DNA of 64,000 bases from Lepidodermella squamata (Eukaryota; Animalia; Gastrotricha). The translations under genes were made by a program, and so were the position numbers. Below the pieces are notes generated by a model. That model was not told the origin of the DNA. It worked only from the letters and a program-made list of their open reading frames with translations, and searched no databases. The stretch covers positions 3,844,001 to 3,908,000 of the forward strand of contig JBLDXI010000015.1 of assembly GCA_047495785.1 (NCBI GenBank), in the 5' to 3' direction. Below are positions 36,733 through 64,000 of the stretch, piece by piece (within the stretch, counting starts at the first letter, position 1; each line of letters begins with the position of its first letter).

Positions 36733-38874
36733 TTACATTTTGGGCGATTTTCGCATCAGGCTACTTTTCGATTTGAAAAAATAGTTGGTGAAACACGTGC
36801 CTGGGCCACTCACAGGAGAAACTGAGAAGCCACGGCTGACAATGTTACAGACATAAAAGTAGCTTTCTTTAGATAAGACATAAGCCAATGAAAATTTACC
36901 TGATCATTCGGCATCGCTGCTCTTCAAGACGGCCTCCAGCATAAGCAAGGTTTGAAACATCTTTATTTGACCATAGTCGCTCAGCAGCAGCACATGCGCG
37001 TGGCCAAGTGATCTGCATTATGTTATGCTCATCAACGTATTCTCCCCACATGCAAGCCTCTCCACCTAACACTTTCGTTTCGTCTGCAACCAAAGTTTCA
37101 TTAAGCAGTTTTACTGGGTCGCATAGATAATGCGCCACCCAGTCTCCATATTCCAATTGATCCAAGTACCAACATGACGAGAAAATGGCTGAATATCCTC
37201 GTTCAGTTACGTTGAGAACAGCCGTTTGGTTATTTGTCCAAACATGAACAACAATACTTCGGTCGGCATTGCCATTCAGCGATATGCCCTCTTCCCAAAG
37301 GTAAATCTGTGGATCTTCTTCAGAAATAGATTTCCTTACACGCTTGAGGATTCTGACCAACCGTCTGTTAAAATATTTAACCAAGTCGTGCATAGATGTC
37401 TCGTTTAACGAGCCTTCTTCAATAATTTCACCCTGTTTCTTCTTCATGTTAACGAGCCATTTACGAATTTTAGGGTTACTCAACCAACAACTCATAGTGA
37501 CTTCATCGCCTCCAGCATGAAACAAGGGCGTATTTTTGAACAAAATAGATGTTTCTGTGAATATTCTCTCGATCACTTGATAAGTCTTCTCGTTTGTGGG
37601 ATCAAGAGGACCTAGGTCACCATTCGGTAGGTTGGTCACGTTGTCGTAGCATCTGGTGAGTATTTCCTCCGGCAAATGCCGCCACGAAAACACGTGGCCT
37701 GGCGTATCAATTTCAGGCATGACAGCTACTCCCCGAATCCGCGCAAATTCAACAATTTCAGCTACATCATTTTTCGTGAACATTTCCAACGGAGAGAAGG
37801 CAGCTTTACGAGCGAATTCTGGAAATGCTTCCAGTTCCAACGGAAAAGAATGGTCATCGCTGATGTGCCAGTGCAAAATATTGTACTTGTTCATAGCCAT
37901 TGCATCAATCATTTTGAATATCGCTGATTTTGGTAGGAAGTGTCGCGATGTGTCGATGAGCAGGCCGCGGTGCTTAAATCGAGGCCAATCTTCAATAACT
38001 GCAGCTCTGACCTTGTAGGAAATAACAGATTTGTCTATTAGATGTTCCTGGGCATAAGCACCATCGGTGAAAATCAGCTGAGAAAGTGTTTCCAGAGCAT
38101 GATTCACGCCCCAAACGTCCTCGGATGCGATGAAGATCCCAGCTTTCTCAACCAGCAATTTGTCTGCAGTTAAAAATGAAATCAGGTGTATACTATATAA
38201 ACAATTAGGGGTATCTGTTACATTTTTCATTTGACGAAGGAAGCGGATATTGCGTACAGTCACCAGTTACAGTAATAATCAATGTACTGAGCGCCTTATG
38301 AGTAAGGTTGATTTCGATGCCACTGACGCGATATTTTGGCTTGCCCATGTATATATCACCCGGGTGCAGCACTGGGTCTTTGATAGCTAAGGGTCTGGCG
38401 GATTTAAATAGAAGCTGCTGTTTGTAAAAGCGATCGACGATCGATTGAATCAGAGAATTACAACTTCCATCTTTTGTTTGGTAACTAAAAGCGAATTTCT
38501 TGGGCGAAATAGCGTAGAAAATATCCATTGGTTCATATTTTTGAGGAAGAGGCCATGGATCACTGATTGGGGCCTGAGAAAAGCGTATAGGGATTTGGAA
38601 ATACTCGTAGCTTGAGAACAAGAAAATGAGTAATGAAATAAATTAATTTGAATAATTAAGACTTGATGCCTTATTATTGAACTTACCCCGCCTTGAAGGC
38701 AGGATGCCATGGCGGTTCCAGTGGCTCCAGAATGGTAACGTTCCCCCACCGCAATTGGGCATCAAGCAGATCAAATTTGGCAGCATGCTGTTGGCTCCAA
38801 AGAGGAACTAACAAGTATAAGGAATTGAAAATAATAGTAAGTAGTAATAGTCCATAAGTCATTTTTCTGTACAT
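36733..38874 (-). CDS. GH20 beta-hexosaminidase, copy 1. Exons approx. 38874-38687, 38610-38221, 38164-36900, 36836-36733
   Basis: Contains EDWPRFKHRGLLIDTSRHF, HWHISDDHSFP, MPEIDTPGH, the catalytic HAGGDE, VLGGEACMWGEYVD, WPRACAAAERLWS and RCRMISRG. The N-terminal hydrophobic segment follows MYRK. Confidence 0.95.
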
Positions 38875-39238: not shown

Positions 39239-42200
39239 TCAATGAAAGCTACGTCGGCCTGAGCGAAAAAATTGTCGAGCAATCATACTAGGCAAACGGA
39301 AATAGCACGCTAAAATTATCACTCCCAGCAACAAAATTGCCGCAAACATGACGTTACCATAAGACGGATATCTCGAAATAGCGATAACAGCCTGAGGCGA
39401 GTCGCTCATAAGAGCTTTCGTGTCGTCGCTACTCGTCGAGGCCTGATCTACAGGTGATTCGTTAGGAGGTTCATTAGCCGTTTCCTCAATGTCATACTTG
39501 GGCTCTTTGAATAGCGGAGGCTTCGGCTGCTGAACATTCAACGACCCAACTGTGAACTTTGATTCCACTTTAGCTTCCTTAGCTGCTTCTTGAGGATTCG
39601 GAGACTTCATTTTTGGCATTACTCCTCCAGCTAAATCAGCTTTCGACCGGAAGAAATAATTTGTGTAACACGTGCCTGGACCGTTGGACGGAGATACTGA
39701 AAATCCTCGACTAAATAAAAATGGATTAAATTATAAATTGGGGAGAAATAATTTATTTTCACCTAATCATTCGACAACGATGTTCCTCATATCGACCGCC
39801 AGCGTATTCAATATCGACCAACTCCTTGTTCGACCAAAGCCGTTCAGCAGCCGCGGCGGCTCGAGGCCACGTGATTTGCATAATATTGTGCTCATCAACG
39901 TATTCACCCCACATACAAGCCTCGCCGCCCAAGACTTTCTTCTCATCAATCGGCAGGCTTTCATTGCCGAGCTTCACCGGATCACACAGGTACTGCTCGA
40001 CCCAATCGGCGTATTTGAATCGATCAAGGTACCAACAGGTCGAATAAATGACCGAGTAACCCTGTTCGGTAATATTGAGCACGCCAGATTGGTTATTGTA
40101 CCAGACGTGGGCGATGAGGCTTTTATCAGCATTTCCGTCCAACGTCACGCCTTCTTCCCACATGTAAATTTTCGGGTCTTCGCCAGAAACAGATTTTCGG
40201 ACCCTCTTCAAAATTTGAACCAGACGCTTGTTGAAATGGGTTATGAGTTCGTGCATCGATTTTTCGGTCAACGAGGCTTCGTCAACTTTGACACCCTGCT
40301 TCTGCTTCATATCAACAAACCATTTTCGAATGTATGGATTACTCAACCAACAGCTCATTTTGACTTCGTCACCGCCAGCGTGGAAGAGCGGAGTTTTCTT
40401 GAAAAGCTTGGTGATTTCCGTGAATATTTTCTCGATAACTTGATACGTCTTCTCATTTGTTGGATCGAGTGGGCCTAAATCGCCGTTTGGTAGATTTGTC
40501 ACGTTGTCATAGCAACGCGTGATTATTTCTTCAGGTAAATGGCGCCATGAGAACACGTGGCCAGGTGTATCGATTTCAGGCATAACCTCAACGCCGCGAA
40601 CTCGTGCGAATTCAATAATTTCAGCAACATCTTTATGGGTGAAAGTCTCATAAGGCGAAAAGGCAGCTCTACTCGTGAAATCCGGGTAAGTTTCCAGTAC
40701 CAAAGGAAATGAATTATCGTCGCTTATATGCCAGTGAAGTATGTTGTACTTGTTCATAGCCATTGCATCAATCATTTTGAAAATCGCTGATTTCGGCAGA
40801 AAATGGCGAGATGTGTCGATGAGCAAGCCGCGATGTTTAAACCGAGGCCAATCTTCAATTGTCACAGCTCTGACCTTGTAATTTGGGGACGCCGCTTCAT
40901 CGTAGCCTTGCAAATATTCGCCCTCAGTAAAAATCAATTGGCACAGCGTTTCCAACGCGTGATTCACTCCCCAAACATCTTCGGCGGTTATTGAAATCCC
41001 TTCCGCATCGATCACCAGGTTATCTAAAGGTTAATTTAATCGATTTAATCAATAAAATAATTAATTAAGACGTGAGTGCCATTTTTTAGGTCAAAGTCCG
41101 CTTTTTAGGATATAGGATCCAGATTTTGGATCAAGATTTCAGATCCAGACTTTAGGTCTAAGAATTGGATCCTATTTCTGGATCTGTCTTATTTTTTGCA
41201 ATACTTAATGGAACCAGTGAATCCACAAAATTTTCAAACGATAAAAAAACCCTGAAAGGAAAAGGGGTGCGAATTTTTCCGCCTCAGCTTGGACCTGGAG
41301 TTTTGCAATGCCGGTTCGTTATAAGGGAGACTTTTTGCCAATGGAAGGTGGGGAAAAGGTCTGCGTACCAGTGGCATCAACTGACCTTCGATTGGATCAA
41401 TCACACTCTCGAGCAACAACATCTTCGAGTCAAGAAGCGGGGTCTGCTTCGTCAAGCGCCACTCGAGCGACGGAAATCGGCTCTGAGGACGCCCCAGTTT
41501 CGATTAGCTCTTCGCTCGAACTTGAACGTGATGTAGCTCATCGTGATGTCAAACCTAGCCGCCGAGTTGGCTATATAATGAGGCGCAATCTACGAATATT
41601 ACGGCCACACAATAACTGTTCAAGACGAAAAGATGACACTTCAACGAATAATATAGATTACGCCCGGCGGATGTATATGCATCTGCACAAACATCGGTAA
41701 ATATTTAGTTTTCGAAATGCCTTCGCGCAAAACATCGAACTTCCTTTCAGAACTCGCACCAAGTTCACAACAGTGGCGGCAAGTATGCGGAAATCGGTGG
41801 CTTGGGCAGTTCTACGCCGGTACCGCAATGACGACTCGAACATTGAATTTATCGATAACGCTTTGCAAGAAAAGCTCGACAGCCATACGGTTTAGAAGAC
41901 TACAACCTCAAACGCTCACGTAAATATCGAGGACGATTTTGAGTGGGACTGATCTTTTCCATGCTATTTATCTAATTGTGGACTTCGGAAGGATTCGATG
42001 TTCATTGCTTGTGAATATGCTGGAACATTTGCTATTGTATTTCATGTTGATTGGCAGTCGAAAACGATTTAAATAGAGTACAATCTATAATCTGGATCCA
42101 ATTCTTGGAGCCAGTTTCTGGATCTAGAATCTGGATCTAATAATTGGTTCTAATTCCTAGATCCATAATCTGGATCCATTATTTGGATCTAAATATCGGA

Positions 42201-43484: not shown

Positions 43485-46400
43485 ATGAGCCACTTTCACG
43501 GCTCCGCAGCCCTTGCGGCGTCGATGCGCCCACTCATGCGGCATCAAATGAACGAATTCGGCAAGTACGCATTAGCTATCGGCGGCGCTGATTTAGTCCT
43601 ACGTTGGCAACCGCCCGCAGTGGTTAACAACGAAGAAGAGGAAGATCTCGAGGCGCCTCAGTCAATCATCGGCCGGGCTTTATCCGAAGTTCGCCGAAAG
43701 CGGTGGTACAGGCGTCTTCGCGCCTTCATCGCCATCGCAGTGAATTCTGCGTAAGTGGAATCGAAATGTCCCAAATTTGTCTTTAATGACCCTTTTAATT
43801 AAGGTGGCTTGAACGCGTGAGCATATTGATAGTTTTCGTTAATTGTGTCACGCTGACGTTTCACCGACCTTGCGCCGAGCGAGTGTCCTGCGACGCGCTG
43901 TGCATTACTTGGAAAGTCGTCGACAAGTTCTCCCTGCTGTTTTTCCTGCTCGAAATGGCGGCGCATATCATTCACAGCGGTTTTAGGGTGTACATCCGTG
44001 ATCGATGGCGCTACCTCGACATCATGATCGTTGTTTTTGGCCTGCTCGAAGAAATAATGCTGTACTTTCAGGTCAACCTAACCTCAATACGGGCTATACG
44101 AGTTTTGCGGCCAGTTAAAACTATCGAATGGATTCCAAGTTTGTATCTTCAAATTATAAACTTCGAATAATTATCTCAATATTTTTCAGGTGTTCGATTA
44201 TTGGTAGCTTTACTTTGGGACACCCTGCCGATGTTAGCTAATGTGTTTTTGTTGAGGTTGAATATTCAGAATTTTGAAGATTTGAAATGACAATATTTTA
44301 TATTTTACAGCATATTTTTCTTTGTCGTGTTCGGAATAATGGCTGTTCAACTATGGGCAGGAGTTTTGCGTCAAAGGTGCTATCACCCGTTCAATGTTTC
44401 GATGTTACCTCGCGATCTCCCTGGGTCTGCATAATTTTTCCACCTGAATGACCAACATAATTTATTATTAATTTTTAGCGTTGAAATGCTGTTGAAAAAT
44501 GCGTTCTATGTTCAACCTATTGGAGATTTTATTTGCTCGCTCGACTCAGGCCTACACAAGTGCTCGAACCTACCTGTCACCCGGTCGACCGTAACCGGGA
44601 AACTTTGCTCGTTATCTGCTGCCGATGCTATAGCTGATTGGAACATGAAACATCAGTTGATTGCTAATTCATCCCTTCTGTCTTACTACGTCAACCAAAC
44701 TTACATCCCAGCATCCTCTATTGCCATGGTTTTGACGGGGTCCTCGCCCACCCTGTCAGGGTGCATAAATTGGAACGGCGCCTACAACACATGCCGCGGC
44801 GATGAAAACTCGCCGAACCCATTTGACGGCGCGATTTCATTCGACAACGTCCTAATGGCTTGGATTTCAATCTTTCAAGTCATTACCTTAGAAGGCTGGT
44901 CGGACATAATGTACTACCTAATGGTAAAAAAAAATTAAATCCACCTTAAAACTTTGCAGAATTTTGAAATTTCTTAGGATGCGCACACAGTTTGGGTATT
45001 TCTGTACTTTGTTCCTTTAATTTTGGTAGGTTAGTTGGTAATGAAGAAAAATTGATGAGCTAGCATGATTTTTGTAGTTTGGATCTTACTTCCTGGTTAA
45101 TCTTTGCTTGGCTTGTATCACAATTCAACTCGCTCGAAGTCAGTATTTGTACTACACCCAAGCGCCTCCCCGATCGACCGATGGAGTTTCAGTATCTCGA
45201 GTTTCTTTGAAATCCTCCTTAATAAATTGGTGGTCAGCGGCTGGATTCCGGTTGTATTTCTTCGATATATACAACCGATCACGAAATTGGTTGAATCGGA
45301 ACTTTGGTCGGCGCGGTTTCAAGCTTCGAACAAGCGATGATGCTACGTCAAACGAAATACCAAGCTCGCCGGAACCTTCGCAGCTCAAACTTCGAGCCGA
45401 TTTGAAAAGTCCGGATCTAGTCAGCTACTTGAAACAGACAAAAAAGCAGGCGGTTAATCTAAACAGCCGAAGTTATTCCTTCGCTACCCTCCACGAGACG
45501 CAGCATCACAGAAATATGGCGTCATTTCGAACAGCTCGGCAGCATTTGATATCAATGTCGTCGTATTCATTCGACGCGGCGGCTCTGGTTGATTTTCAGG
45601 AGACGTCTTTGGATTCCTGTGCGAGCTTGGCCGATAGTGCTGTTCAAATTAACAACGAGCAGGAGGCTGAGGATGGAGACGCTTTCTTAGATGCTGAAAC
45701 TTCAAACACTTCCAACTTCACCGAGGCCGATGTGACGGTTCATAGAGATGCTATGGGATCCCAAAATGAAGATTCAAGGTGAGAATTTTTCCAAAAATTT
45801 CAATTTTTTATGCTAATCTATTTTAGCCGTCCCAATTTAAATCGCCAATATTCGGTAAATTATGACGATGACGTCTTTGACAGTGTTGTTTCTTCGAACG
45901 ATCAACACCGGCGTCGATTGCCGATAATACCTGGCGATGACGAAATCGAGTCTATCGATGACGATTTCAATTCAGCCGTCGACCATTTCGAGTACAACGC
46001 ACCCGATGCGGATGAGCAGCTGCCGGTGCCAAAAAATTCGCCTAGTTCCGTCCGCTCTATCAATATTTGCACGGGCTTGTGCCTGGAAGACGCGTGGGTC
46101 TTCACGTGCCGTTGTATGGCCAAGTGCCGTAATTGGATGGGCCGGCAGCTGCGCGACCCTATGAGCGACTACTTTTTTATGTACTGCATAGGCATAAATA
46201 CGCTGAGCCTGGCTATCGAACATCACGATCAGCCGAGGGCGTTGGCTATAATTATCAACGCGGTCAATGCGTTGTTTACACTCATTTTCGCACTTGAGCT
46301 GCTCGTCAAAGTCATTTGCTTTGGGCCGTCTTACTACACTAGCAATTTGTTCAACGCAACCGATGCTATCGTCGTATTTTTCACGTAAAATTTGAATTCG

Positions 46401-49400
46401 AAAATTGATTGAAATTGATTGAAAATGTAAAAAATTTGAGTCTTTGAATGACCAAATGACCAAATGAATCAGTTTTATTTTTCGTCCTCCGTAGGCATGT
46501 GATGTTAAAGAAGAAAGTAGAAAAAAGCCTTACCCGTGAGGGTTTAGGGGACGGCTGAGTCTTTTGAGTCTTTTGAGGATTTTAATTATTTTTTTTCAAA
46601 TTTCAAATTGATTGAAAACCTGGTCAGACTTTTCATCAGTGACACCTTGTCAGTAAAAAATTCATAAAATCGAATTTTAGTATTAATTTAAATAAGTAAT
46701 CCTTGAAGACAAGTGAGCAGTGACATTTCAGCAGCGACAAATGAGCAAGTGGCACTTCATCAATTTTTATTTAATAATCTCGGGCATTGAACTTGCGCTT
46801 TTTGACCTCACGTTTAATGCAACGCATAGTCTGAATACAACTGAAATTCTACTGATGAAATGTCTCCGCTGAAATGTCACTGCGCAAATGTCACGGAAAG
46901 GAAATTAATTAATTTGAAAAATATAGGATAAATGAACGAAAATCCCTGCTGACTGGTCACTGATGATTTGTCACTGCGCAAATGTCGCAGCTCAAATTTG
47001 TCACCGAGGAACGGTCACTGATGATTTGACCCTCATTTGCTGAAATGTCACTGCTGAAACTGCTTATCTTCAAAGTTTTCTCCGTAAAAGAAAGAAAATT
47101 GATTCTTTTTAGAAGGCTGAGATAACTTGGCCTTATCAAATTGCTGGCAGATTATCGAGTCCCTATTTCCTTATACATAGATCGATCTAAGGTTTGGGAC
47201 CTTTTAGGTTTCCCGAGCTTTTCACAATCCCAATTTCCCCATGTGACGTAGATCTACGTCACATGAATTTCCCTAATCCGTGATTTTTACGATATTTGAA
47301 GCCTCAGAGGCAAACATTGAAAATGAATCTGAAAGATTTAGCGATAAGATGCTCAAATTCAGAGCTGAATTAACCTCAATTTTAGTGATACGAATATTTA
47401 CACCCTCTGAATGAAATTTTTCGAACTTTGAATTGAAGCAATATATGTTTTTGTTATTAGAATAATCGACATGTTCAGCGACACAACATTCACAGTTTTC
47501 CGGGCATTTCGATTGGTTCGCCTCTTCAAGCTCATGGTATTCATACCATCACTTCGAACGACCTTGCAATCACTACTACGAGTCGTCGATTCAGCCATAA
47601 CATTCCTCATTTTCCTATTCATCTGCATGTACGTATTTGCCCTATTCGGAATTTTCCTTCTCGGCGGCCGTCTATGTGAAACCGAAACTGGCGAGCCATG
47701 CGTTTGCGGCATCCCTCCACCCGGCGCTATTCGCTGTACCTGCAATCGCAAAAATTTCGACTCATTCTTCCCAGCAATGTTGTCCGTGTTTCAAATTTTC
47801 ACGCAAGAAAGCTGGAACGAACTGTTATACGAATCAATGTCAAAAGTTTCGCCATTTGTTTCCATCTACTACATTTTACTAGTCACCGTGGGAAATTTCG
47901 TCCTACTCAACCTTTTGATTGCCATTTTGGTCTCGGGTTTCCTTGAACGAGCGATGGAACAAAACCCACAGGTCAAAGCTACGATTCTGTCGATGGATAA
48001 GGGCAAATTCACTCCTAAGCCGTTATTTTTCAAGCCGGAGAGGGAGGCAAAGGCCCATTTGTGTAGGCACCGAAAACGTTCGAAGCGACGTGCGTCAAGT
48101 CTCGTCAATTTAAACGCTGAAAAATTGATCGATCTCGGTGTATTAAGGCGGAATCGATCTATGGGTTGTCTCGCTGCATTCGAGCCTGAATTCCCACGCT
48201 TTCTACCCCAAGTTCGACTCTATGATGAAACAGCAACTAATTCCAGCGATTCGAACGCCGAATTTCTATCAGCTGCTGCTGTAAACTCGACAAAATCGTC
48301 TATTCTCACCAGTCAAAGCGATTCGAAGTTCTTGACACCGAACTTCAACTACCACCCGAATATGATTGGGTTCAATGTTGGCGAGGATTTGGCCCGAATT
48401 AGGCGATTGGTCGAGGAGGCCCGGCCGATCACGACTTCCTACCTATGCGAGCAAATATTCATAATTGCTGGGAAGCATTTCCGTCATGAAGTCGCTCGTC
48501 GAGTTGATTGGGCGTTTTTCCTACTATCACCTGATAGCAGCATCCGCCGCGTCATTCGAAATATCGTCGAGCATCGCTATTTCGATCGCGGCCTGTTCGG
48601 TTTGATAGCCGCAAATTGCATAGCAGTAGCAGTCGAGAGTCCGAATATCGATCCGGACTCGATTTTGAGGGTAGTCCTAGACACAATCAATGATTTAATG
48701 ACCATCCTATTCGTATTCGAAATGTTGCTGAAGATGATAGCATTTTGCGCACTTTTCGGCGACAAAAATGCCTACCTTAAAAGCGGCTGGAACATCCTAG
48801 ACTGCGTTCTCGCCGTAGTTTGCGTCGCTGAAATGTTGATTTCGAAGCTATTAAAGGGCACGAATACGCAAATTTTGAGTGCGTTAAGGGTGCTTCGAAT
48901 GTTAAGGGCGCTACGACCTCTCAGGGTGATCAACAGCTCGCGAAGTTTGCGCCTCATTGTCGAGACTGTTTTTTCGTCAATGTCCGAAATTGGCACAGTA
49001 TTCCTAATTTGCTTCTTCTTCTTCCTGATTTACGCTATATTCGGCGTCCAGCAATTCAGTGGATGCCTCGGAAGGTGCCGAGGTGGGAATGTTACCTTCG
49101 TTCGAACTGTAAGTCGATGAATCATTATTAAGGTTGCGTTATTTATTTCTTAATTTTAGAGAATCGAGTGTGTTGTTACTGGGAATAAGTGGTCGAACGA
49201 TTTTTACAACTACGACAACGTTTTATCAGCTCTTCAAACGCTGTTTGTCTTCGCAACTTTCGATAACTGGATGGCGATCATGTTTGCCGGGGTCGATTGT
49301 GTAGGCGTTGATCGTCAGCCGCAAGAAAATTACAATTTATGGCGAATAATTTATTTTATAACTTTCATCATATTTTGCGGATTTTTCCTTCTCAACATTT

Positions 49401-50890
49401 TCGTCGGAGTTGTTGTTTCAAATTTTCAACGAAATTTCGACAACATGCGAGCTCGAGATGCTGCGCTAGCTGCCGAAGCCGCTGCTGCGCTGATGGCCGC
49501 TGGAAAATCGAGGCGAAAATCGTCGTCGGACGCCAAGGCTGATGCAGCTGACCGAAAATTATCGGTCACCCCGAGATCGGGGAAGAATACCTCGTTTTCA
49601 ACGATGATGCAAGCACCGACGCGGAATGACTTCATCCCGGTTGTCGGGGGTGTTGGTCGCAATCCACGGCTCTCAATCAACCCTGTTTCGATTCCTGAAA
49701 TCATAGAACCGACCAGTAACAAAGCCCAAAAGTGCTGTTTTTACCTTCGTCAGCAATTTCACAACGTTTTCACCCACCCTTATTTCGGTTAGCTCAGAAA
49801 ATTTCTGAATAATACTCAAAATTGTCTCTTAAATTAAAGAAAATTCTAAAAAATATTGAATTTTTTGAAAGTAATTTAATTAAATTTTAATTTTTTTTTA
49901 AATTTAATTAAATTTAATTTAAATTTCAATTTTTTTTCCTTTCAAGACTTGGCATCTGGAATATTGATTTTGCTCAACGTTCTACTCATGGCCATTGAGC
50001 ACTACAACATGTCGAATGAATTGGAAAAGTTCGTCGCGGTCACTTCGAATGTATTCACGGCAGTTTTCACCGCTGAAATGTCCCTTCGACTCATAGCCAT
50101 GGGCTGCCGAGGCTATTTCACCGAGTATTGGAACATTTTCGACTTTGTCATCGTTATCAGCTCGCTGGCCAGCACGATTTTCGAGGAAATGAGCCGAAAT
50201 GAATTGCCGTTGAACGCGACTCTGGTCAGAGTCATGAGAATAGCGAAATTCGCGAGGGTCCTCAAAGTGTTACGGGTCGCCAACACCATGCACCGAATCA
50301 TCGATACAGTCGGGAAAAGTTTGCTTCAAGTCGGCCATTTGTCGCTCCTCATCGTTCTAGTTTTCTTCATCTACGCCGCATTGGGCGTCGAGCTGTTCGG
50401 CCGATTGGATTGGAAAAATGCGAACATGGACCGAGATTGCCAACCCGGCCAATACAAGTGCCACGTTTTAGGCGAGCACGCTAATTTCGCGCACATGGGC
50501 ATCGCTATGCTGACGTTGTTCCGCATCCTAACCGGCGACAATTGGTCCGGCATTATGAAGGACATAGTTCAGTTACCGTGCGATGCCTCGGCGAATTGCA
50601 TTCCGAATCAAACTTTTTCGCACAGCTATTTGGCTAATTTAACGGCAAGAAATGACATTGCCCGCGGTGAAAATGGCGAGCCTTTGTTTTGCTGTGTTCC
50701 AGCCTTACTGCCAGCCGCCTACTTCATTTCATTTGTCCTCATCACCACACTGTGCCTGCTTAACTTAGTTGTCGCCGTTATAATGGGCTCGCTCGAAGAT
50801 TCGTACGAGAACACGTCAGACGGCGGCGATTCACACGAGCACAAATCAGCAGTTGAAAAAACAGCAACAGCATTAGCTATACCTAAATGA
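43485..50890 (+). CDS. CACNA1G/cca-1-like: Divergent Cav3/T-type voltage-gated cation channel alpha1 (4x6TM). Exons approx. 43485-43751, 43804-44139, 44190-44256, 44311-44424, 44479-44923, 44978-45024, 45078-45778, 45827-46384, 47461-49108, 49159-49787, 49947-50890
   Basis: Pore loops TLEGW / TQESW / TFDNW / TGDNW give the EEDD filter. T-type signatures include LLLDTLPMLANV, CINWNGAYNTC...NPFDGAISFDN, NRKNFDSF, DCVGVDRQPQENYN and YAALGVELFGRL. Four S4 segments are present. Confidence 0.93.
46701..47075. mobile_element. MITE-like element in a Cav3 intron with TIRs and ~14-bp subterminal repeats
   Basis: The left end CCTTGAAGACAAG...GCAGTGACATTTCAGCA mirrors the right end TGCTGAAATGTCACTGC...CTTATCTTCAAAG. 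Internal ACTG(A/C)(T/G)NAAATGTC units repeat. This explains part of the 1.08-kb intron. Confidence 0.7.
47240..47265. repeat. Perfect 26-bp palindrome
   Basis: CATGTGACGTAGA|TCTACGTCACATG. Confidence 0.9.
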
Positions 50891-59800: not shown

Positions 59801-61481
59801 TACTATTATTATTGCTATTATTATTATTATTGACAATATTGGTGATGGTAGCAGCAGCGCCTGCTATATCTTTCGCCGGGCTGTGTCGCGCTCTTTTCGC
59901 ACACCCGAGATGTGACTAAATACATGTAGTAGGATTTTCGCTATGCAAAAATCGCCGTGTCATGCAAAGCAGCGGCCGAAGCTACAATGATGATAATAAT
60001 AATTCATCATATTTTTATTATTTTTATTACTCCTTATTATTGCAACGCTTGTATGTATGTAGATCTGTATACTATCAACTTCTCTCGCTGAGCCATTTGC
60101 TCGCGCGCCGCTGCGCTGCGGCGGTGTCACACCGGGCAGACGCGCGCGTGCGCTGTTTTGCCCTGCGCCTCCCTCCCGCCCAGCTCCTAAAACGCGAACC
60201 GGCGTCTTTTTACAGCAAAAACTACTAGTATCTATCCATTTACTCAATGTAGCGGCACTACTGCCACCACCACCACCAGTAGCGCGCTGGGAACTCAATA
60301 TTTCAACGCACACAGCGCGACACGGCCAATCAAGCGCGGTCGCTAAATTCAGTTATCGCTCCATAGCGGAAAAAATAGCGTTACGACCGCCGGTTATATG
60401 CGACCCGTTCTAAATTGCGATCGCCTCTATATATACGTTGGCCTAATTCGATTGGACCTACGCACACAAAACTTCGTTATAACCGCAATGTTTGTAAACT
60501 ACCGAAGATTTTTCTCCCTTGTATCCTTACACTATAAGCCGCCCCCTCAAATTATAAGATTTGAGCCACTTTTTTCGTTATTTATTTTTAATTAAGGAGC
60601 TCGGAAAAAATCACCTTCTCGTTATCATTGATAATATAGGAATTTGGTGTATTGTTTTAGCCAACTTGAAAATTAAATCTTCGTCATTTATTTATTAACT
60701 GTTCGAGAGGGCCTGGAGCTGTTTCTTCGTCTGGTTTTTGATTCATCGCGAGAACACTTGAGAGCTGTTAAAAATTAATCATTAAAAAAATATTCGATGT
60801 TGCCGTACAAGGGTGCGTGATTGATTGATTTCCTACGCGTAACCACCATCATCATATCATCATCTCGATCACTGACTCGGACCCGTCGTCGAGCCTCCTC
60901 AACGTGTTAATTTATTAGTGTTGATGCTGCTGTTGCCGCTCCCGACCAGCTTGCCTCACTTATCGCTGCTGCTGTTGTCAACAACTGGATCATCATCATC
61001 ATCATTATCGTCTTCTTCGCTACATCGCCGGTTTATTTGCAGAGGCGACGCCACGACGACTTGAACGCGCATCATCATCGCCATCGACGAGCTTTGATTT
61101 GCGACTGCAGCTAGCCAGCAATTTGTATTGAGCCACCCATCCGCATCGCTGCTACTACTACTACTTCTTTGTGTGCCTTCTTCGCAAAGTCGGCGGCGTT
61201 TTTTAGCGCGCACTAAAGCCACCTGGGCGCCGTGAGGAGCGGCCGCGCGCTGTTGAATTACGACGACGGCGACACGCAAGACTACTTACTACTGCTGCTA
61301 CTACAGGCACAAGAGTAGTCGCGTCGCGATTCGCCGCCGTGTCATTAATTACATTTAACTACTACTACTACACACTGCTCGTTCGATTTTTGTGTGCAAT
61401 TCACCGCGGTGAAGATAACCACAATTTTTGACACGTTGTTAACGTTAACGCCACAAAATTCCGTCCGGAAGCCATTCAAAA

Positions 61482-64000
61482 ATGGGAAAGCAAGATTTGC
61501 TCGAGCAAATCTTAGACATGCTGCAAAAGTAAGCTTCCTTGAAATCTCTCTCAAATGCGTTGATTTTTATTTTCAAATTTATTTAACCCCGAAAATTTAA
61601 CATTTTTTCATGATTAATCAAGAAAAATGCGGAAATGAGTAATCCGTGTTTTTGATGAGACAATAATTTTGTTGAATAATGACTATTTTTTATTTTCTTC
61701 CCATTGCAAACAGTATGCAGCGGAATGGTACAGGTCAGTTGGGGAATTTCAAAAACCCGGCTGATGCGTGTTCAGATCGAAGATGGTACATATTTACGGC
61801 TGCCTCGCTCGTCATCCTATTAACGGGTCTTCTGCTTATCGTGATAACGCGCCTACTGCTTTGGCTCATATTTTCGCCGCGCGACAAGGATAAGAAACGG
61901 CTCGAGAGCTTCTGCGATGCCTTCGTCAAAAGCCGCCAGTTCGACCAGCACTGGTGGGCGGAGACCAAGGCGTGGTCGCAGGGCCTCATCTCCGGCCAGA
62001 CGTCGGTCGGCAAAGTCATGGTTGCTACAACTTTTCTGTTCAGCGTCATTTCTCTCGTTGTCTACATGGTCGACACGTTATTGTACGCCTGATTATTTCG
62101 AAGCCCTGATTTTTTCATCAAACAATTGTTTCCCCCCTCACCTAGGTATCATGTCGAAAGCTGTATGCCCTGGAACGGTGCTTTCACCCGCCAAATAGAT
62201 CTCGTCCTCAACATGTATTTTCTCATCAACTTTTTCCTTCGGGTGAGTATTCCGATGCGTATATATCATGTTATTGATTGCGTTTTTCTTGTGTTTCTTC
62301 TCCGCCGTCGCGCCGCTGCTTGCTAGATTATGAATTACATAAACCTGTAAAAACGCGCGCCGATATTATTTTTAGTAGCGGCACGAGAGACTAGTCTGTA
62401 GAGGAGAAGAAAAAAATCAATTAAAATGAGCCTAATCAGGTGTAACTAATTCATGGTGTTTACATTTCACAGTTTGTTGCGGCTGAGGACAAGCTTATCT
62501 TCTGGACAAACATTTATTCGATTGTCGATTATTTTACCATTCCGCCTGTTATCCTCGAAACCGTCATGAACCGATCTTGGATAGGTAAATTTTCGAAAAA
62601 AAATTGAGATGAAAAATGATTGATGATTTTTCTTATTTTTTTCAGGACTTCGGTTCATGCGTGCCATTTGTTTTATGCAATTTTCGGACATTTTACAATT
62701 TCTTCACATTTTACGCACTGGCAACAGCATACGTTTAGCTCAGCTAGCCTCAATCTTCCTTACCGTTTGGGTTGCTTCAGCAGGAATGTTTTATTTGGTA
62801 AGTTGTGCTTTTTATCGATTATCAGCTCGCTAAAAATAAATTGCGTGTCTACAAAATTGGGACAGTAAAATCAGCCCACCTAGCGCGATACGTTGCTATG
62901 TCCATGGCTATTTGCGTAAAACGCAAACGCAAACGCAAAATGACGTATTTTCCGCTAGAAAATCGACCTAAAAACAATAATGATGAGAGGACTAAAAACT
63001 AGGTCACGCACTAGCCGAATTACGTGGAAAGGTCAAATTTTATAGCTAAAACAATTTGCATGACCTATAGGCAATAAATATGGAAAATGCGTAATTATTT
63101 CAGGAAAGTAATTTTAAGGAGGAATTTTTGAAAAATGATGGTAATTTTTTTATTTTATTTTTTTGCAAATATAGTTGGAGAATACTGGCGATCCGTTTTA
63201 TTCGTACCAAAATTCGCACGACATAGACTATTTCAACTGCATGTATTACCTCCTGGTGACAATGTCGACGGTCGGCTACGGCGATGTAACGCCGACGACC
63301 GTTCTCGGCAAGATTTTCGTTGTGTTGTACATTCTTGGCGCGCTCGCCATGTTCGCCACCTTCATCCCCGAGATGGTCGAGTGCATATCGACCGACAAGT
63401 ACGGCGGCGAGTTTGAAAAAGAGCCGAACAAGCCGCACATCGTGCTGTGCGGCAACATCGACTACCGATCCGTCGACAACTTCTTGAAAGACTTTTTACA
63501 CGAGGACCGAGAGGACATTAACATAACAACGGTGCTGCTAGATAAGCAGACACCGTCGTTGGAGCTACAGGCGTTGATGAAGCGCCACTTTACCAAGGTG
63601 CAGTTTTTTCGCGGCACGGTTATGAACAGCCGCGATTTGTGCCGCGTCAAGGTGAGCGAGGCGGACGCGTGTCTCGTGATCGCGAACAAGAACGCGGACG
63701 ACCCGCACGCCGAGGACATGGCGAACATCATGCGCGTGATAGCCGTGAAAAACTACTGCCAAAACATCCGCATCATCGTGCAGCTGCTGTGCTACTCTAA
63801 CAAAATCTACCTGATGAACATTCCCGGCTGGAACAAGGAGGACTGCATCGTGTGCCTGCCGGAGCTCAAACTCGGCTTCATGGCGCAGTCGTGCCTCGCG
63901 CCGGGCTTCTCCACGCTGCTCGCCAACCTGTTCACGATGCGCTCGGACAACGTCACCGACGACATGCCCGACTGGATGAAGGACTACGTTATCGGTGCTG
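61482..64000 (+). CDS. slo: Divergent Slo1/BK (KCNMA1-family) Ca2+-activated K+ channel, 5' part. Exons 61482-61528, 61714-62082, 62146-62242, 62473-62584, 62646-62797, 63175->64000
   Basis: Contains S0 (RRWYIFTAASLVILL), LISGQTSVGK, VDYFTIPP, LENTGDP and the pore TMSTVGYGD. RCK1 motifs are HIVLCGNI...NFLKDFLHEDR, ADACLVIANK, ANIMRVIAVKNY and ELKLGFMAQSCLAPGFSTLLANLF. The ATG at 61482 splices in frame to the exon at 61714. Confidence 0.95.

Follow-up and report, generated by a model that had tools for sequence, protein, structure and literature searches.

A Slo1-clade K+ channel gene without the canonical Mg2+-site residues and the S4 arginine R213

BK (Slo1) channels are the textbook example of allosteric gating by voltage, Ca2+ and Mg2+. 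In the stretch of DNA analysed here (64,000 nucleotides, called the window), the translations of a set of exons match BK channels, while the residues of the low-affinity Mg2+ site and its effector in S4 are all replaced. Is this a sequencing error or a copy in decay, a lineage that never possessed the site, or a working channel with a different interface? We argue that the window probably holds the first two-thirds (5') of a K+ channel gene of the Slo1 clade (BK-type) that is functional and in which the metal site at the interface between voltage sensor and RCK1 was rebuilt and then frozen by selection.

The exons were queried one by one against the sequences of solved structures, instead of as one joined full-length model (Table 1). 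A 2488-nt contig from an independent public run (X2) joins five exons at GT..AG boundaries and confirms the exon model exactly, so that the gene is observed to be transcribed and spliced. Four exons show 0 differences to the window, among them the stretches 61714-62082 and 62644-62796, and the last exon shows 2, both at third positions. The codon for Cys213 is intact in the spliced contig. This single spliced contig recovered from the run represents one isoform, and the introns of the window gene show no sign of a second, alternative S4 exon. At the 5' end, an X2 contig over 60704-61528 joins 61528 to 61714 across a GT..AG intron, and from the ATG at 61482 a run of 15 codons and one split codon leads in frame into the next exon. 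Since the position equivalent to 61715 carries no ATG in a relative (contig L003), the start codon is probably this upstream in-frame ATG. The intron after S2 is present in both the window gene and the orthologue of this relative (L001-L003), whereas the introns at 62083-62145, 62585-62645 and 62798-63174 are absent from the latter, in which the flanking exons form a continuous open reading frame (window 61714-64000 compared with L003 522-2165).

The surroundings of the gene contain large exons with Ion_trans domains just upstream, and two tandem GH20 beta-hexosaminidase genes with long single exons. The best named relatives of the latter, 38-43% identical, come from molluscs, a nemertean, amphioxus and arthropods, with no rotifer among the best 120 matches. 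Directly upstream of the 5' exon of the channel gene, the joints in low-depth X2 contigs suggest inverted-repeat or low-complexity sequence.

Table 1. Coordinates of features in the window, with the basis for each assignment.
Feature	Position	Strand	Basis
Two tandem GH20 genes	36896-38263 and 39759-41015	-	
Large exons with Ion_trans domains	45108-50890	+	
Segment upstream of the Slo 5' exon	59950-60629		several 'opposite strands' joints in low-depth X2 contigs
Slo gene with introns	about 60.7 kb to window end	+	
5' exon: leader and probable start codon (61482)	60704-61528	+	run X2 contig; frame open from 61482
Exon: S0, S0-S1 linker, S1	61714-62082	+	phmmer against Aplysia and human BK
Ala at D99 position (A99 codon)	61970-61972	+	window ETKAWSQ, Aplysia BK EAKDWAG
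Exon: S1-S2 loop and S2; D153, R167 kept	62146-62242	+	X2 splice joint 62082 to 62146; residue table
Exon: S2-S3 linker and S3; D186 kept	62473-62584	+	ungapped alignment to human BK 168-204; X2 splice joints
Glu at N172 position (E172 codon)	62485-62487	+	FVAAEDK, human FIAANDK; exon ungapped to 168-204
Exon: S4, S4-S5 linker, S5 start	62646-62797	+	ungapped to human BK 206-255
Cys at R213 position (C213 codon, TGT)	62669-62671	+	LRFMRAIC, human LRFLRALR; exon ungapped to 206-255
Exon: S5 end, pore (GYGD), S6, C-linker, RCK1 N-lobe	63175-64000, past window end	+	phmmer against PDB, Pfam, codon table
Glu at Aplysia-E328 (aE328) position, kept	63421-63423	+	alignment, codon table
Lys at aK331 (mouse R342) position, kept	63430-63432	+	alignment, codon table
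D362 codon	63490-63492	+	codon table
D367 codon	63505-63507	+	codon table
T374 codon	63526-63528	+	last-exon alignment and codon table
K397 codon	63595-63597	+	last-exon alignment and codon table
Q399 codon	63601-63603	+	last-exon alignment and codon table
M513/R514 codons	63937-63942	+	codon table

Where does the encoded protein belong? Among solved structures, phmmer gives the highest score to Aplysia BK (372 bits, E 1e-110, over 275 residues), followed by Drosophila Slo (367) and human BK (353), with Slo3 at 165 and Slo2 at 107, and Pfam matches comprise Ion_trans, Ion_trans_2, Slo-like_RCK and BK_channel_a. The architecture of S0 plus an S1-S6 core with a GYGD filter is present: S0, linker and S1 of the Aplysia, Drosophila and human BK channels are matched by the first coding exon, the alignment to BK has no gaps in S2-S6 and the pore, and the last exon aligns to residues 245-521 of Aplysia and 256-531 of human BK. 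Overall, the protein is 55-57% identical to canonical Slo1 of all phyla. In a search of representatives P0001 is the only close match: this gene call of 481 residues comes from a metagenome contig in ENA and has 99% identity to the window protein in the 275-residue exon common to both, and the next matches are about 50-56% identical. A word search with P0001 among proteins of 265-842 residues yields no named match above 57%, and a scan of JGI metagenomes yields no close relative, with one weak locus (L006, 45%). The three metagenome contigs of this protein, L001-L003, stem from three samples, represent one other species and are 98.7-99.9% identical to each other. In a careful maximum-likelihood tree, in which P0001 stands in for the window gene, canonical Slo1, Slo3 and the window-like protein form a clade with a support of 97/96, which places the latter in the bilaterian Slo1 clade and not with Slo2-like channels.

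Within this familiar frame six residues are replaced: D99A, N172E, R213C, E374T, Q397K and E399Q in mouse Slo1 numbering, as read from exon-by-exon alignments to human and Aplysia BK that are ungapped at each site. The position of D99 is anchored by the correspondence of Aplysia D86 to mouse D99 (PMC5677106). All of these substitutions, which the initial annotation had proposed from the first base of the A99 codon (61970) to the last base of the Q399 codon (63603), stand at those coordinates on the + strand. The canonical set D99/N172/E374/E399 is thus absent, its positions reading A, E, T and Q. The S4 charge R213 is missing too: the window, the RNA contig and L001-L003 all have Cys there. 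The S4 exon otherwise keeps R207 and R210 and has Asp for E219. One detail of the annotation needs a correction, namely the canonical reference at 172: it is Asn in some channels, but Ser in most protostome Slo1.

The Ca2+ sensors have fared differently. D362, H365, D367, K392, R393, H394, M513 and R514 are kept in the window, and the codon table bears out the annotation's statement that D362/D367 and M513/R514 are retained. The RCK1 Ca2+ site (D367, R514, E535; D362, M513) is present, with E535, which lies beyond the window end, read from P0001. Past the window end lies also the Ca2+ bowl, to which the annotation had pointed, and it is known from the relative's contig L003, where it aligns ungapped and keeps Q889, D892, D895 and D897 (QFLDIEDEDTPD). 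The pore, the remaining voltage-sensor charges and the RCK1 Ca2+ site are intact, and so is the Ca2+ bowl in the relative's contig. Of the positions that are constant in 66 canonical Slo1 proteins, 23/135 (17%) are changed in the window protein, mostly conservatively; R213, E374 and E399 are invariant in this comparison by construction, because the canonical set was chosen for those three. Every position of the Mg2+ pathway is changed, as against none of the Ca2+-site residues listed, and this pattern is more than chance.

Is such a channel peculiar to the window? The six positions were read in 269 Slo matches (a human KCNMA1 fragment, P0243, is part of this bulk survey and left out of later counts). 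Canonical Slo1 channels have D99, N or S at 172, R213, E374 and E399, but many divergent Slo1-like proteins lack those residues, from a sea star, annelids, a nemertean, tardigrades, flatworms, Seison, a ctenophore and a sponge. The variant without the Mg2+ site is not unique to the window gene, and similar relatives are widespread in animal sequence databases, although the full combination A99/E172/C213/T374/K397/Q399 is limited to the window and P0001/P0151. This distribution suggests that the Mg2+ site belongs to canonical Slo1 only and that many uncharacterised animal Slo1-like channels are without it. Our literature search found no paper on a natural Slo1 without the Mg2+ site, nor on rotifer Slo channels.

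For 68 Slo representatives both R213 and the E374/E399 pair are readable. The two are intact together in 11 and absent together in 30, and in another 27 R213 is kept where the pair is absent; the fourth combination, an intact pair without R213, occurs in 0/68. The loss of R213 is hence always nested in lineages without the pair (30/30), whereas the converse does not hold. R213 thus seems to be lost only where the metal pair is absent; a test for coupled loss with independent pairs has no power on these data.

A distant clade of Slo-like proteins from metagenomes (P0044, P0045, P0047, P0056, P0068, P0073, P0074) shows the same residue classes at the six positions. The full set, readable in P0044, is A99, E172, W213, H374, R397 and Q399; W213 and the H/R/Q triad recur in the other members of the clade. 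This clade is placed outside bilaterian Slo1 and may represent convergence on the same metal-free configuration.

Was the Mg2+ site lost, or was it never there? The tree fits both. The window-like protein has no supported position inside the bilaterian Slo1 clade, and an AU test does not reject the protein of the rotifer Seison as its sister (p 0.245). If the lineage never had the site, the gene would go back to an ancient Slo1-like paralogue whose branch parted before E374/E399 arose in canonical Slo1, and its residues would be ancestral. What keeps this alternative alive is that early-branching and outgroup Slo proteins lack the pair and frequently combine a basic residue at 397 with Gln399, as illustrated at 374/397/399 by P0041 (T/R/Q), P0108 (T/K/Q), P0017 (T/K/A) and the P0044 clade (H/R/Q). 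The best tree also groups the canonical channels of ecdysozoans, spiralians and deuterostomes and leaves the divergent site-less sequences, including that of the window, outside. This split between canonical and divergent sequences is, however, weakly supported (33/87 and lower) and is of the kind that long-branch attraction produces, with a window-like branch of 0.71 compared to about 0.1-0.2 for canonical sequences. Moreover, both Ca2+ sites are kept, and the protein is otherwise 55-57% identical to canonical Slo1, whichever phylum is taken. Taken together, we consider an original absence of the site unlikely, though with a real share of the probability. In the same tree we looked at the canonical clade of P0005 as a candidate for the canonical Slo1 of the window's taxon and rejected it: these sequences come from other samples and group with a spider Slo1 (92/90) inside a well-supported arthropod Slo1, so they are no evidence for a canonical copy in this taxon.

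What would a channel with a rebuilt interface do? In mouse Slo1, any single mutation of the four Mg2+ ligands abolishes Mg2+ sensitivity, D99A completely, a positive charge at 397 mimics Mg2+, and with R213 neutralised neither Mg2+ nor Q397R has an effect any longer (PMC5677106), while Ca2+ sensing is unaffected by this neutralisation (PMC4319557). As single mutations of a ligand or of R213 abolish activation by millimolar Mg2+ and spare Ca2+ sensing, the window channel is predicted to be gated by micromolar Ca2+ and to be insensitive to Mg2+ via the classical site. Of the about 0.6 e per sensor, R213 accounts for about 0.3 e (PMC4319557), from which we predict roughly half the usual gating charge and a weakened voltage sensor.

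The charges at the interface offer a hint on how the coupling between the two modules might be maintained. E172 and the C-linker Glu are negative, K397 and the R342-equivalent Lys are positive, and A99, T374 and Q399 are neutral, which gives a net charge of 0 without metal in the window protein compared to about -3 in the canonical set before Mg2+ binds. At the same time, the change from Asn/Glu to Glu/Gln at 172/399 has the look of an amide/carboxylate swap. Our favoured, if speculative, reading of this balance and this swap is a metal-free network of salt bridges, in which two acidic residues, E172 and the retained C-linker Glu, would bind two basic ones, K397 and the likewise retained R342-equivalent Lys. 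Such bridges would link the voltage sensor to the RCK1 of the adjacent subunit, a role that Mg2+ plays in canonical channels, and this link could offset the loss of R213. Besides the sequence, the proposal draws on mutants at 172/399, not 172/397, in which V1/2 moves by about -45 to -60 mV when the two positions carry opposite charges (PMC3557308, Table 1).

A bolder version would have Mg2+ replaced in the course of evolution by a protein cation: Lys397 and the R342-equivalent Lys would be joined to Glu172 and the C-linker Glu in a lasting salt bridge between subunits, which would build the 'Mg2+-bound' coupling permanently into the protein. We regard this version as doubtful at present. If it were true, the fact that R213 is lost only from channels that lack the metal site would count as evidence from nature for a link between Mg2+ and R213, which has been proposed on functional and disputed on structural grounds: mutagenesis indicates that Mg2+ acts by repelling R213, and the Aplysia structures put the two 22-23 A apart (PMC5677106).

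Could the site instead be remodelled and still bind a metal? In this alternative Glu172, Thr374, Gln399, the C-linker Glu and the T396 carbonyl would hold a divalent ion, Mg2+ or another, with altered affinity, and this ion would act by a route other than R213. A weakened divalent site is conceivable because oxygen donors stand at 172, 374, 399, at the position of Aplysia E328 and in the T396 backbone. Each position of a direct ligand in Aplysia (N161, E363, E388, E328) still has an oxygen-bearing side chain (PMC5677106), the exchange at 172/399 looks compensatory, and the residue equivalent to D99 is no direct ligand in the Aplysia structure. Nevertheless, the bidentate carboxylate of E374 is gone, a Lys has been added two residues from 399, the net local charge has moved from about -3 to 0, and in mouse Slo1 single mutations of E374 or E399 suffice to abolish Mg2+ sensitivity (PMC5677106). 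We therefore view a remodelled metal site as quite improbable.

How does selection act on the gene? Between the window and the second species (L001-L003), the last exon is 80% identical in nucleotides and 99.6% in amino acids (274/275 residues). Over the 275 codons of this pore/RCK1 exon pS is 0.88, and thus saturated, compared to a pN of 0.009; for the N-terminal exon the identity is 77%. The second species carries the same six replacements, with synonymous differences in the codons of A99, E172 and Q399. Other runs, one of them a biofilm metatranscriptome, contain relatives that are 90-99% identical in nucleotides; their differences lie nearly all at third positions, and the A99 codon is unchanged in them where it is covered. 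As to composition, GC at third positions is 0.40 in the S4 exon (62648-62797) and 0.82 in the pore/RCK1 exon (63175-63999), compared to 0.51 in the orthologous exon of L001-L003, and this shift helps to push pS above 0.75.

The contrast between pN and pS argues for a fixed redesign and not for ongoing decay. The annotation had concluded that R213C is real and old rather than an error, and Cys213 in a spliced contig of an independent run and in a second species with saturated synonymous sites agrees with it on both counts. Its further claim that the whole pathway decayed together stands only in part: every pathway position is indeed replaced, but purifying selection is strong now, the replacements are non-random and the pair is often absent where R213 is kept. 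The window channel is a fixed, strongly constrained design, and its branch in the tree, with a long stem and then hardly any change between two species, is compatible with a rapid early phase of change and strong constraint thereafter. A decaying redundant copy, a pseudogene or an error of sequencing or assembly, which nothing but the unusual residues themselves would suggest, is scarcely credible and in effect ruled out, along with relaxed decay, by a frame that is open across all exons, the spliced RNA contig, the recurrence of the six residues in three contigs of another species and the low pN.

The result is a variant inside a well-known family and no new kind of system. Since the whole Mg2+ pathway is changed while both Ca2+ sensors are kept, in a gene that is nearly unchanged under selection, it offers a ready background for testing how BK gating depends on the interface. 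With canonical Slo1/BK (Aplysia 5tj6, Drosophila 7pxe, human 6v22) the window channel has in common S0-S6 and two RCK domains, GYGD, the inner ring of the E321/E324 type, D153, R167, D186, R207 and R210, as well as D367, R514, E535, H365/H394, K392/R393 and the Ca2+ bowl (E535 and bowl from the relative's contig). Canonical channels differ from it by the presence of D99, N172, E374, E399, Q397 and R213 and by their shorter branches.

Vertebrate Slo3 (KCNU1) is a Slo1-derived paralogue with altered ligand sensing and a degenerate Ca2+ bowl. Like the window protein it is a paralogue of the Slo1 clade without E399 (Thr in P0019, P0264 and others), but the Slo3 representatives surveyed keep R213 and E374. 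The window protein itself is not a Slo3: it does not group with P0019, P0264 and P0031, its Ca2+ sites are kept, with an intact bowl in the relative, and its score is more than twice as high for Slo1 as for the Slo3 gating ring.

Other invertebrates have 'alpha-1-like' or 'BK-like' paralogues in the Slo1 clade (Acanthaster XP_022111761, Owenia CAH1784201, Tubulanus XP_074641051, tardigrade paralogues, Seison KAI3384474), in which the E374/E399 pair is absent as in the window. Several of these uncharacterised proteins are also without R213, with I213/N374/K397/R399 in Acanthaster and I213/N374/K399 in Owenia; their best identity to the window protein is about 50%, and no placement with them is supported. 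Finally, the engineered mutants of mouse Slo1 (D99A, E374/E399, N172D/E399R, Q397R/K and R213 neutralisation) concern the very positions by which experiments have defined the Mg2+ pathway and that are naturally combined in the window (PMC5677106, PMC3557308, PMC4319557). Unlike in these mutants, the changes in the window stand together in a native, selected background.
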